DNA of 64,000 nt from Tubulanus polymorphus (lineage: Eukaryota > Animalia > Nemertea): NCBI RefSeq assembly GCF_964204645.1, contig NC_134033.1:15818655-15882654 (forward strand), given 5' to 3'. Below are positions 27,001-36,000 of the stretch, one piece after another. The translations under genes and the position numbers were made by a program. Under the pieces are notes generated by a model, which was given only the letters and a program-made list of their open reading frames with translations, was not told where the DNA came from and did not search any database. How positions within the stretch are numbered: position 1 is the stretch's first letter; the number at the start of each line of letters is the position of its first letter.

Positions 27001-30000
27001 TCATGTGACGCAATACTCGCATCTGATTGGCTACGGCGAAAAATAACAGTCTAAGGAAAAAGAACTTGTTCGTTCCTTATGTTTTGGCTTACGATCAGTT
27101 TTCGATGGACCCGTTGCGGTCGTAAGTACACTCGTGTTGAGAAGGTTCCGGATATAAATATCGCAGACTTGACTGCTTATGATCCGATGATCTGATCAGA
27201 TCTTAGTCGACTTGAGTTAGGCATTTTCTTTTATAAATATATATATTTATCTTAAGTTTATTTGCCATAAAAGTTGAGCGGCCTGTTGTAGAAAGCTCCA
27301 TACCAGACTAAATCACACCCACTGGAGTCAGGTGGGGGATTGATCAGTTTAGGAAATAGAATATCTGAAATTACAGGATAAAGAAACATAATATCAGTGT
27401 TTTTAGTAAGAAATTAACAAGCCAGGAGGGTCCTATAATATGTCTCAGTCCCTGAAACGAAAGCTGGTTTGAAAAAACAGGTGGTCCTTACAAAACGACA
27501 GACAGGTCTAGCCCGGGACTTGGCTCTTATTGAAAACACTGAATATAGAAATCTCCAAGCTTCGCTTTAATGGATGTTAAAACATCTTGCGGCCGCGGAG
27601 GATTCAAAATATTAAATTTCCTGTGTAGGTATTTAAGGTTTACAAGTCAAACCTTTACTTAAGACTGGTATTCTACAGTACCTCATGATGTCGTTGCCCA
27701 GATTTTCTTCGTTATATTGAAGTTGTATTTTATATTGAACAGGAGTATGGACAGCGAGCAGAATATAATGTCGGCAATGTCAGCGATGGCCGAACCTCAA
27801 GACGAAGAACTCAGTCCGGAAGACGATGAGGAAATTAATCTCAATTTATCGAAAGGTCAAACTAAGTACGTATACGATATCGTATCATAGCACGACTTTA
27901 TCTAGGACTCGGTTTTTAGTCCCAGTTTAGGCTTAGTTTTATCAGTAACTGACTCAGTTCTGAGTCAAATTGTATCAAGATTCAACTTGAGATATTTGAA
28001 GGCAAAAGCGATTTATTAAAATCCCAACTCAAACTAACTTCTGATCAGCGATGAATGAAATTTGTATTTCTATTTTCTGTTTCATCAGGAAACCGATGCG
28101 AATTGAACCCACTATGGACAAAGTCGCTGATTATCAGGTAAAGACACTAAATTTTTAGTCATCTACAATTGAAAAATATAATCTGAATCAATTTGAATTG
28201 CAGTTTCGCTTGACTCCGTTTGTGTCTAATGTTGTTCTCAGGTTAGTGTTCAAACTATAAATACAGAAAACAGTAGACGGCGCGTTTGCCTGAGATTTCG
28301 CGGGACCGAGGCGTCGGTGTGTGAATGGGTCATCCATCATCACATGAATTGTAGGAGGGTGAAAAAGTTTACAATATTGACGACCACTCACGAGGAAATC
28401 AGGGAATAGTCGGGGAATTTAGTAAAAAAGCTAAAAATCAGAGAAAAATCGGGGAATTTTGATAGAAAAAAAAATTAAAAATCAGAAAACATGTTGAGAT
28501 TGTTAAATCGCGCATGAAATCAAACAGTTTCCGCATATGTCTTATGTATTGATTGTGTTTATTGATTGAATTCTTAGCAGATCGAGTCAGGGAAACATCG
28601 CGCATGTCTGGAAATAGGGAAAAAAGAAGGTGACCACCCGGTTGTTTCACGGGCCGCTTGATGGTCAGGGCCCAGTTTCACATAAAGGTTTAACTCTTAA
28701 ATCGATTCAATTTCTTCATTAATTCAGTTTATCTAAAACGATTTAGGCCTCAATCCTTTATGTGAACCTGGGCCCAGAGGCAATAAGCATACGCGCAGTC
28801 TACTGTATTTAGGTCAAAGATAGGAAATGTATTTCGACTTGTTTTCAGTAACGTATTTCAATCGAGGCACAACAATCGATAACCATCGTTTTATTGATTC
28901 CATTTCTGTTGTAAATTCACCGATTTATCGCTAAGGTAACTATACACATACAATCGGTGCGTCTCGCGGTCGGGTCTCGGATACTCATTCGACCGGCCCT
29001 CATTCTACAAGTCGGCCCGTACACGCAGAAAACGAACAAAAGCGCCCCGGACGACGAGTCATCGGGTATCGAAAAGGAAAAGGTAGATTGCATGGTTGTG
29101 TTCCCCCCGCGCGGGCGATGGTTGTCTTCCCACAGATGGGCGCGGCGCGGCTCGGGTTTTCACACGCATGCACGAGCCGAACTCGCGTCTGTTACGGCGA
29201 ATGCGATTGGTCGAAGTCCTCGTGATTTGTGGTCGGATCTTGCATCGTTTGGTCACGGTCTCACTCGATGTTGTCTCTTTATTTATTTTCAGGTTGTGAG
29301 GTGGTTTTTATTTTTCGAATTCTCTCCTCATTCGGCCCTAGTGAATGTTTTTATCCGTTGTATGAAATCCCGCTCTAACGATGAACAGCGATCGAAATGT
29401 TTCATCGAGTTGATAGTTCAACATTTGAACTGCATGTATTTGCTAATAGTCGTCTTCAGGAATATTTGTGCTTTAACAAAATTATGAGATATATTTACAA
29501 TTCAGAATGAAGTTGGTTTAACATAACCGGCCGATAAATACCATAGCAACAATGAACTCAAACCTACTTGAACATTTGAGCAACTGCAGCTCCTGGACCC
29601 AGTTCCACAGTTCTGAGTTAAGATTTGACTCGGAGTTAAATCATCGGAAATGAACTAATTTTAACCCAGAGTTAACTCTAACTCACGACTGTGGAACTGG
29701 ATCCTGGTGATTTTATTGTTAGCGTGGGATTTTATATAATCTTTATAACACAGACTCGGGAATGTCCCGTCAATCGACGGTGTTCACCCACGATGGCCTC
29801 ATTTGTTTTTTTGTCATCTCTGTTCTAGCTTCACGTTAACGTCTGTGAAGTGCGAATGGCCGTCGGTAAACGTTTAGAAATATCGTGCGACCTCGTTTTG
29901 ACGATCGATTCGTACCGGGAGAAAACAACAATGCAAGCGTCGTCGGGTATCGCTGTAGATGTATGTAACGCGGGGAGAGAGCCGTCGAGAACCGCTTCAG

Positions 30001-33000: not shown

Positions 33001-36000
33001 AAACGAACAATCCGTATTTCGCAGAGGTACACAAACCGCTTCGTCGCTACGGCGACGTCTGCACACTAATCTACGGGTCAAGGTCAATGCTGCCGATAGC
33101 TAATTATTATGCGTATATGCAAATGTGTATTTAACGGTTACCAAACAGTAAGTGATTTACTTTGTTAACAAAAATAAGTGTTTTGCACACGCCAGGCGCC
33201 ACTTGCACAGTCCTGCGACTCAAATAATGGGTCTTAAATCTTAAGACCGGTCTTAATTTGTGAGATTGGTTATAGAACCAAAATTAGCTTCGGCTGGTCT
33301 TAAGTTGTAAGATTGGTTATAGAACCAAAATGAACTTAGACTGGTCTTAAATCTAAGCCATGAATGCAACTGACCCCAGGTATATTTGTTTATGAATAAC
33401 TATTGCTTTAATTATGATAAGTTAACTGATGTACATGTATTACACAAAGTGATGTAAATGGATAACATTAATTGATGTACATCTATTAAACTAACTGCTG
33501 TACATGTATAACACTAATTGATGTACATCTATTAAACTAACTGCTGTACATGTATAACACTAATTGATGTACATCTATTAAACTAACTGATGTACATCTA
33601 TTGAACTAACTGATGTACATGTATTACACTAACTGATGTACATGTATTACACTAACTGATGTACATGTATTACACTAACTGATGTACATGTATTACACTA
33701 ACTGATGTACATGTATTACATCTATATTACTGCTGCACTCTCAGGAAGGAGGATTCTTGCACACATTAGCTACCAGTCGATCGGTGCCGAAATGGCTCGA
33801 TGTTAGTAAACTGATATCGAGAAAAACCCCGAGACAGGTAACAATTCATCTCCGCTGCTTACGATAACATGAACAAGTTTTGAGTTTAACTTATACTTAA
33901 CGTTCTCGAAGACAAGTCTAGTCTAAAACAATCCACAGTTATGAAGAAAAACTATTTTCGTTTCATTTTTCTTTTTTCTTTTCAGTATTTCGTGTTTGAT
34001 TTTAAAATGACTAAAGCTCAATTGTTCGATCAAGTTATAAACATAACGGTAAGTTCCACTCGTCCCTTGTCAATCACAGAGATTCCAGTTCAACAGGATT
34101 TGTGAGTTAGAGACAACCCTGAAATCAGGCTCCACTTCCATAGTTTTATGAGTTAGATTTTACTCTGAATTTGGAATCCAGTTCCACAGTTGTGTGAGTT
34201 AGAGTTAACTCTGAGCTCAGGATCAAGTTCTATAGTTGTGAGTTAGAGTTAACTCTGAATGCAGGATCCTTTTCTGCAGTTATGAGTTAGAGTTAACTCT
34301 GAACTCAGGATCCTGTTCCACGGTGATTTGAGTTAGAGTTAACTCTGTACTCAGGATCCAGTTCCACAGTTTTGTGTGTTAGAGACAACTTGAAATCAGT
34401 TCATTTTCCAAAGAGTTTCACTGTGAGTTAAATCTAACTCACTCAAAACTGTGAAACTCAATGCAGTATTTAATTACTATTTTCGTTTGTCGTGACAGGC
34501 GATTGCCACAGGTCGCTCCATACCAGGAATCAGACGCGGTCAGAAAATCGGAGTATTCAAAATGGATGTCGGTACAGTTTACACAGCTCCAGGTACTGTG
34601 TGAGATTTATTTCATCGTTTACTACTATAGCTTGTATACAACTTTCCATTGTTTTCAGTTATGACCCATAAAACTGGTCACAATAATTCGCACACAGTTT
34701 TTTATGATGACTTTTCTTTACGATGATTCAGATCACATGTTTCCTAATAAATGGGCCGTGTTGATGGACCCGGACGATGTCGCTGCCGGACCTCGCGGGT
34801 ACCTGAAGTGTACTATAATGGTTATCGGTAAAGGTGAACCCGTCAAGGTAAGCTAACCGTGAATCGAAATTGGCGCCATCGAATTTTAAAAAGTTCTCTC
34901 TTCCACATTTATGAAACCCAACCCTGCTGAATGCTGGTAAGTGCTGTGAAGTGCAGTGAAGTACTTGTACATTTTGCACTGAATGTTATCGCAGGAATGA
35001 CAAATTCAGTCGTGGTCCATTGCGCCTTTACGACTTTGTCAAAGTTGAAAGTAGTGAATAGGTTTCAAATTTGATCATGGATGCATGTTCTTATTTCATG
35101 GCTTGATTATTGATTAAGAAAATTGCCAGCAACTCATCTTTGGATTCTCCTCAGTCCGGCGGCTACAAACCCTGTAACACGTTTTAAAAACATTATATTC
35201 ATGAGTAATATATACATGTTCTCTATTAGTATAAGTTACTGATAGGTGTTAATCGTTGGTAGTTACTGTTGCGGTTAGTAATAGTTTTTGACTTTTCTTG
35301 AAATTTCTAACTCCATTTCGCACAGGATCAAATGGTAAAAGATTTTTAAAAAAAACATTTTGCTGAATATTTGAATTCATAGTCATTTCTAGTCGTCCTT
35401 TCTTCGACGTCGGTGTAGTGTTCAATTCCGCTGATTTTTTTAATCGAATAAACTTTAATTTCTTTCTATTGTATTTCTATTATTTTGTAAACTCTTGTTG
35501 TTTACCGTGGTGTTACTTTGTTACATACTATTATTTACCCTTATGCTTAGTACTCAGGTGTGTATTATCAATTAGTGCAATCAATTTTGTTTAAATTTGA
35601 TTATATCAAATTCCTTACGTTCATTTTATGTTTATAGCAGTTCTCTCCCACTGCTTCAAGTAGGTTTTATTTGGTGTTGCTATCAACCGGGGTCCAGTCG
35701 CACAGTCTTCACTAGAGTCTAGAAGTTGTCTTAGGAGTGTTGTTAGATTGGTTATAGAACCACCATGAGCTCAGACTGGTCTTGTTATAGAGAACTACAA
35801 TGAGCTTAGACTGGTCTTAAGTTGTTAAGTTAGACTGTTATAGAACTAAAATGAGCTTAGTCTGAAGTTGTAAGATTGCTTACAGAACCAAAATAAGCTT
35901 AAACTAGTCTTAAGTTGTTAGATTCGCTATAGAACCAAAATGAGCTTAGACTGGTCTTAAGTGGTTAGATTAGACTGTTATAGAACTAAAATGAGCTTAG

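Follow-up and report, generated by a model that had tools for sequence, protein, structure and literature searches.

A cluster of tandemly duplicated exons was found in an otoferlin-like ferlin gene of the nemertean Tubulanus polymorphus (genome of 268 Mb), within the 64-kb stretch of DNA that was analysed in full and is called here the window (G000:C9:15818655-15882654). Two unannotated exons, designated A and B, precede the canonical exon that encodes the start of C2B (its first half), and it is probable that both are working alternative coding exons of this ferlin. The exchange of half of C2B, put forward in a preliminary description of the locus, is strongly supported by the corresponding cluster and the annotated isoforms of another ribbon worm, Lineus longissimus, and we infer that A and B are used in Tubulanus as well, one at a time. 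The features concerned are the following (positions in the window):

28089..28137, + strand: constitutive exon ending in ...DYQ, upstream of the cluster; phase 0 at its 3' end; donor 6.7 bits (45th percentile)
28855..29391, no strand: CpG-rich island around exon A, 52 CpG
28936..29082, + strand: alternative exon A, 147 nucleotides (nt), phase 0-0, unannotated; encodes C2B strands b1-b3 and loop 1
29779..30112, no strand: CpG-rich island around exon B, 33 CpG
29829..29960, + strand: alternative exon B, 132 nt, phase 0-0, unannotated; paralog of A (exon-profile match of 81 bits)
32895..33026, + strand: canonical exon, encoding the first half of C2B, 132 nt, phase 0-0
33027..33147, + strand: extension of the canonical exon, 121 nt; present in the RefSeq model and in an RNA-like contig (piece 32892-33147)
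33745..33837, + strand: companion exon, 93 nt, phase 0-0; within XP_074657543.1; basic, with a conserved W and a KTPR motif
33986..34048, + strand: constitutive exon starting with YFVFDF (strand b4 of C2B); conserved with Lineus at the DNA level

The gene was identified with one of the C2 exons in the window as a protein query, which retrieved XP_074657543.1, a 2238-residue protein of Tubulanus polymorphus annotated as "otoferlin-like". This protein maps exon by exon onto the window, and 40 splice junctions were recovered by exact-match mapping. The C2A exons, from 23933 on, lie upstream of the cluster and are intact.

Exons A, B and canonical have the positions, translations and 0-0 phase first reported for them, with AG before and GT after each. 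The homology of A and B reported at the same time was reproduced by BLASTP (E value 7e-9; 17 of 43 residues identical, 40%), and this E value is still significant after a correction of about 1e4-fold for the whole intron read in three frames. Both exons are single-copy, with a depth of about 38 in DNA run X1 against hundreds to more than 100,000 over neighbouring repeats, and searches of the Tubulanus genome detected no further copy of A or B, the hits elsewhere being only copies of a miniature inverted-repeat transposable element (MITE) at 29591-29707.

The canonical exon aligns with the start of C2B in the solved structures of otoferlin and myoferlin, and with the same exon in the ferlins of Owenia (47% identity), Glandiceps, Antedon and Hydra. 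Its relationship to the alternative exons is visible mainly in profiles: BLASTP gave no match of B to the canonical exon, and a profile-profile comparison of alternative and canonical exons gave a weak match in register (E 0.014). A profile of all five nemertean alternative exons, namely A, B and the three Lineus exons described below, matches the Lineus canonical exon at E 8e-4, which is its only match in the Tubulanus and Lineus loci outside the alternative exons; among 293 ferlins, its next matches are canonical C2B first halves, in register from exon position 1. The alternative exons therefore derive from the canonical exon by duplication and form an old branch of their own. Local DNA alignments of the three exon units gave only weak scores (z about 3), so that the homology among A, B and the canonical exon is visible at the protein level only. 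In an exon-by-exon Pfam scan the canonical exon scored 13 bits for C2 (cutoff 22) and A and B gave nothing, as is to be expected for pieces of 44 residues.

The decisive comparison comes from Lineus longissimus, whose "otoferlin-like" protein is the nearest relative of XP_074657543.1 (50% identity over residues 45-545). The Lineus gene (locus L018, OU343001.1:5060408-5126518) has eight RefSeq isoforms, X1-X8 (XP_064639490 to XP_064639498), which differ exactly at the first half of C2B. Seven of the eight consist here of the DYQ exon, a 47-residue segment with an E-C-R-V-A-V-G motif (alt1), a 30-residue basic companion and the YFVFDF exon; isoform X5 has the DYQ exon, the canonical C2B exon and the YFVFDF exon, without the companion. 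Thus the annotated isoforms carry alt1 or the canonical exon, never both, and the companion only in the presence of an alternative exon. Two further intact copies, alt2 and alt3, were found in the same intron, and the cluster is arranged as follows (positions in L018):

ends at 9936: DYQ exon, constitutive
10416-10556: alt1, 141 nt, annotated
11075-11200: alt2, 126 nt, unannotated, intact
12158-12289: alt3, 132 nt, unannotated, intact
12647-12778: canonical exon, 132 nt, annotated in isoform X5 only
13803-13892: companion exon, 90 nt, annotated, with a GC donor
starts at 14314: YFVFDF exon, constitutive

All exons of the cluster are in phase 0-0 with splice sites, and the substitution pattern of alt2 and alt3 is of the coding type. 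The order of exons in the intron (alternatives, canonical, companion, YFVFDF) is common to both species, Lineus having three alternative copies whereas Tubulanus has two. Exon A matches alt3 with a BLASTP E value of 1e-9 and 44% identity from exon position 1. The profile of A and B matches that of alt1-3 in register, with a probability of 94% and an E value of 9e-8, although B alone, being too diverged, gave no pairwise match to alt1. No similarity was detected between the intron DNA of the two species. Conservation in related species, which the preliminary description had suggested as a check, is thus borne out in Lineus, with reading frames kept and alternative-exon profiles that match. Elsewhere in the Lineus gene, isoform X2 has a replaced segment of similar length in a basic region (P0291 against P0289, alignment columns 1967-1999), an alignment that suggests another pair of alternative exons.

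The companion exon had been overlooked in the preliminary description. The Tubulanus exon matches its Lineus counterpart (L018:13803-13892) at a BLASTP E value of 3e-11, and it is expressed in Tubulanus, being present in the RefSeq model and in a spliced RNA-like contig. The junctions proposed earlier, from A or B directly to 33986, are most likely not those used, since the Lineus alternative exon joins the companion; the junctions to be expected are 29082 or 29960 to 33745.

To evaluate the coding potential of A and B, splice-site matrices and a codon-usage score were built on the mapped exons of this gene, its introns serving as background. The score per codon is 0.59 for A and 0.39 for B, in the claimed frame only, compared with 0.59 for the canonical exon and 0.35 for the companion; the real exons of the gene, in whose range A and B fall, have a quartile of 0.33 and a median of 0.48. 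None of the 241 control windows taken from introns scores as high as A or B, their mean being -0.67 and their maximum 0.245. Past the donor of A the score falls to 0.21 and then to -0.19, and past that of B to 0.20, which supports the ends given for the two exons. The best in-frame donors of A and B are also those proposed before, with 6.8 bits for A (45th percentile) and 5.5 bits for B (GTATGT, 35th percentile); the canonical exon has an acceptor of 9.3 bits and a donor, at 33026, of 6.1 bits. Identity between A and B is 49%, 66% and 39% at codon positions 1, 2 and 3, respectively, and 9 of their 17 identical residues are encoded by different codons. In all 10 pairs among the five alternative exons, position 2 is the most conserved and position 3 the least.

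Transcripts of the Tubulanus gene were sought in the contigs of a single run (X4), which was taken as RNA by its features, no run being recorded as RNA. It was treated so because its depth in unique bins fits one spliced contig of 4914 nt at depth 33, because unique intron bins read 0, and because in this run alone A-to-G changes are in excess, grouped next to a perfect inverted repeat of 242 nt. In the cluster region the X4 contig contains the DYQ exon, piece 32892-33147, the companion exon and the YFVFDF exon only. The depth of X4 is consistent with the inclusion of the DYQ exon, the counterpart of which ends at L018:9936 in Lineus. The last letters of the DYQ exon, "cag", recur at the left end of the piece, indicating a 28137>32895 junction, and the right end of the piece, 33147, lies just before GTAAGT. 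The RNA check suggested in the preliminary description thus confirmed the joining of the canonical exon, and no junction of A or B was seen in the contigs of this run.

The 33147>33745 junction, also recovered from the mapping of XP_074657543.1, uses a donor (ACA|GTAAGT, 9.0 bits, 85th percentile) that is stronger than the conserved one at 33026 (6.1 bits), and the 121-nt extension which it adds to the canonical exon includes an in-frame TAA stop at 33132-33134, making the canonical-plus-companion product unproductive. Because of this stop the RefSeq protein begins at the ATG at 33109 and has neither C2A nor the first half of C2B. Spliced through 33026>33986, the full-length frame is intact and conserved; in Owenia, the counterpart of the canonical exon directly abuts the YFVFDF exon, which is what the canonical junction would give in Tubulanus. 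The current gene model of Tubulanus would omit two coding exons, and it starts the protein at an internal ATG because the transcript on which it is based meets a stop past the canonical exon. A tandem array (33356-33766) of a 23-nt unit, in about 12 overlapping, in-register copies, occupies much of the intron that separates the 33147 donor from the companion.

Some of these data weigh against A and B being working exons. The Tubulanus gene has a single RefSeq model, which lacks both, and there was no contig and a depth of 0 over A and B in X4, against about 33 over the constitutive exons; as contigs drop rare forms, this limits the use of A and B in that sample and does not exclude it. Their acceptors score 2.1 bits (A) and 2.6 bits (B), at the 8th percentile of the gene, values equalled by 48-59 of the intron's 249 decoy AGs; weak acceptors are common for regulated exons, and are not distinctive for A and B. 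The Lineus isoforms are automated predictions, with alt2 and alt3 unannotated, and the alternative form, which dominates the annotation in Lineus, is not annotated in Tubulanus.

On the same grounds A and B could be relics of an ancestral cassette which works in Lineus and has become silent pseudo-exons in Tubulanus, where the dominant transcript joins the canonical exon to the companion and where neither a contig of the RNA-like run, a RefSeq isoform nor a strong acceptor speaks for their use. We regard this as unlikely, given that both frames are intact, that their codon usage is exon-like and frame-specific, and that third codon positions are near random with the second conserved. In addition, despite the deep split within nemerteans between the two species, over which no similarity is seen in the intron DNA, A is still 44% identical to an exon of Lineus, and the companion, whose sole productive partner in the annotated Lineus isoforms is an alternative exon, is still expressed. 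A chance or repeat-borne resemblance between A and B might be suspected in an intron full of MITE-like repeats; it is refuted by the single-copy state of both exons and by their matches to each other and to Lineus (E 1e-9 to 9e-8), and we give it practically no credence.

The preliminary description had also offered A and B as early terminal exons, and the CpG-rich sequence which it noted past both is indeed there, as islands extending beyond A and B. Such terminal or poison exons would produce short soluble C2A proteins or reduce expression, and the idea draws on these flanks, on an open frame that continues for 134 codons past the donor of A and 36 past that of B, and on the canonical exon itself, which continues in the transcript to 33147 and meets a stop at 33132. 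CpG-rich islands elsewhere in the gene mostly coincide with exons. We find this explanation very unlikely for A and B, since the codon-usage score drops at both donors, the best in-frame donors are the proposed ones, and a word-based protein search with the extended frame of A, an open frame of 190 codons, gave no relative among proteins of similar length, which speaks against a longer coding exon and against a nested gene. In Lineus a stop follows two codons past alt1, and alt1 is an internal exon. An alternative promoter with an alternative first coding exon does not describe A and B, which are internal: the C2A exons precede them, and each has an acceptor and a donor site at its ends.

The consequences for the domain were examined with AlphaFold2 on the natural Lineus isoforms, with ferlin C2B domains making up the alignment. 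A confident C2 sandwich was predicted for the canonical form (predicted local distance difference test, pLDDT, 89), and the alternative isoform, the one variant to which the modelling proposed earlier was applied, keeps the C2 sandwich with a mean pLDDT of 74.6, its best structural matches being otoferlin C2B (E 5e-13). The alternative exon forms strands b1-b3, with block means of pLDDT of 67-91, lowest between b1 and b2; the alignment rows were canonical C2B, so that confidence in the alternative strands may be borrowed, a further point to be counted against working exons. Residues 48-82, comprising the end of the alternative exon and the companion, are disordered just before strand b4. In the C2 topology the b1-b2 and b3-b4 loops are at the lipid-binding end, and the exchange would accordingly be expected to affect the membrane-facing end of C2B. 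At the loop-1 position, where the ferlin consensus is D-P, the canonical exon has N-P in Tubulanus and S-P in Lineus and the alternatives have R, S or H. With the loop-1 aspartate missing in both versions, a Ca2+ on/off switch of the dysferlin C2A type is unlikely.

A and B are old tandem duplicates of the canonical exon for b1-b3 and loop 1. If they are working exons, the DYQ exon would be spliced to A or B, then to the companion (33745-33837) and to the YFVFDF exon, in place of the canonical exon. The remainder of the C2B sandwich would be retained, with a changed b1-b3 face and a loop 1 two residues longer, and the NPYF-type motif would be lost, with a flexible basic insert of about 35 residues placed just before strand b4. 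Such a switch would reshape the lipid-binding face and add a basic flexible loop.

Since all cluster exons are in phase 0-0, the reading frame alone does not enforce exclusivity. A more elaborate model is that of an ancient interleaved nemertean switch, in which one of two to three upstream paralogous exons is chosen together with the downstream companion, remodelling the membrane-facing loops of C2B, and in which the mixed canonical-plus-companion form is disabled by the poison donor at 33147, with exclusivity achieved via reading frame or RNA decay and not via phase; as a whole this model is doubtful and we offer it tentatively. A perfect 13-bp complementary pair consists of 29323-29335, in the flank after A, and 30199-30211, in the flank after B, against a chance expectation of about 0.08 such pairs for the unique intron sequence; its second arm is in a short tandem duplication. 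Exon B would be looped out by this putative pairing.

Ferlins act in membrane fusion and membrane repair, and their C2 domains are usually regarded as fixed modules. If the half-swap of C2B and its basic insert have been kept since the early ribbon-worm split, as the two clusters indicate, C2B would have been tuned in evolution not through gene duplication alone but also through splicing, and the nemertean cluster would provide natural variants for testing the role of the C2B loop face. We classify the C2B cluster as one of a known kind, the tandem-duplicated alternative exon cluster. In the exon clusters of Dscam, mutually exclusive tandem duplicates swap half an Ig domain. Dscam-type clusters and the nemertean cluster alike consist of tandem paralogous exons of equal phase and similar length, coding for the same part of a beta-sandwich; unlike in the former, the nemertean canonical exon sits between the alternatives and the companion, and with all exons in phase 0-0 the reading frame does not impose exclusivity.

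Our literature searches found nothing relevant on mutually exclusive exons of ferlins or alternative exons of C2B, and no paper describing the Lineus isoforms, which are automated database models. The closest ferlin precedents are in dysferlin. According to the papers that cite the original report, C2A and C2A variant 1 of dysferlin differ by an alternative first exon (Fuson et al. 2014, Structure 22:104, cited in PMC7140416 and PMC11544258). As in the nemertean cluster, alternative exons there encode versions of the start of one C2 domain, but dysferlin uses an alternative promoter and first exon, whereas A and B are internal, belong to C2B, come in two to three copies and are accompanied by an extra insert exon. 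To go by the title of that report, the dysferlin C2A variant reportedly alters Ca2+ dependence. Exon 40a of dysferlin adds a 21-residue insert to C2E which carries a calpain site (PMC11544258, PMC4230592). Like the companion, it is an optional small exon adding a flexible insert within a ferlin C2 domain; it differs in the domain concerned and in its calpain site, the nemertean insert being basic with a conserved W and KTPR.

A second point of comparison lies at the other end of the protein. The terminal transmembrane exons of the otoferlin type are, like the C2B cluster, tandem duplicated exons used alternatively, and the same gene has such a pair; these exons swap the membrane anchor and are widespread, whereas the C2B cluster swaps part of a C2 domain. 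Annotated isoforms of Lineus, Glandiceps and Hydra swap the C-terminal transmembrane exon, and those of Owenia also differ there. The Tubulanus pair, at 61564-61728 and 62531-62716, has 45% protein identity, and the RefSeq model takes the second.

Of the animals whose ferlins were compared, only the two nemerteans, Tubulanus and Lineus, were found to have the C2B cluster. The annotated isoforms of the Glandiceps, Owenia, Hydra and Ascaphus ferlins include none differing in C2B, and the Owenia relative has neither an alternative nor a companion exon, the intron before its canonical exon being only about 355 nt long. In the Owenia ferlin locus (L019:8398-8923), a short coding segment with the motif DGSIGDW... 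occurs in about seven tandem repeats beside an annotated exon. The Tubulanus genome holds two further ferlin genes, with C2B exons at G000:C2:4267231-4267356 and G000:C2:1416526-1416651; one of these exons is close to vertebrate otoferlin, and the other gene is, judged by eye, nearer to dysferlin/myoferlin. Within 10 kb on each side of these exons no alternative or companion exon was detected.

The intron that holds the cluster has some further features. A fourth candidate exon, suggested earlier at 28242, was rejected: it lies in repeated DNA (X1 depth of at least 653 over 28250-28849) and overlaps one arm of an inverted-repeat pair (28267-28289 and 28787-28809), has no usable donor at the single end position scored (28352) and a stop after 55 codons, and does not match the exon profile. 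Between exon B and the canonical exon, the perfect 242-nt inverted repeat (31029-31270 and 31591-31832) lies on both sides of an open frame of 128 codons on the minus strand (31246-31629), which we take, from our own reading of it, to resemble a GIY-YIG nuclease motif. The clustered A-to-G changes of X4, at 31875-31889, adjoin this repeat, in the pattern expected for editing of double-stranded RNA.

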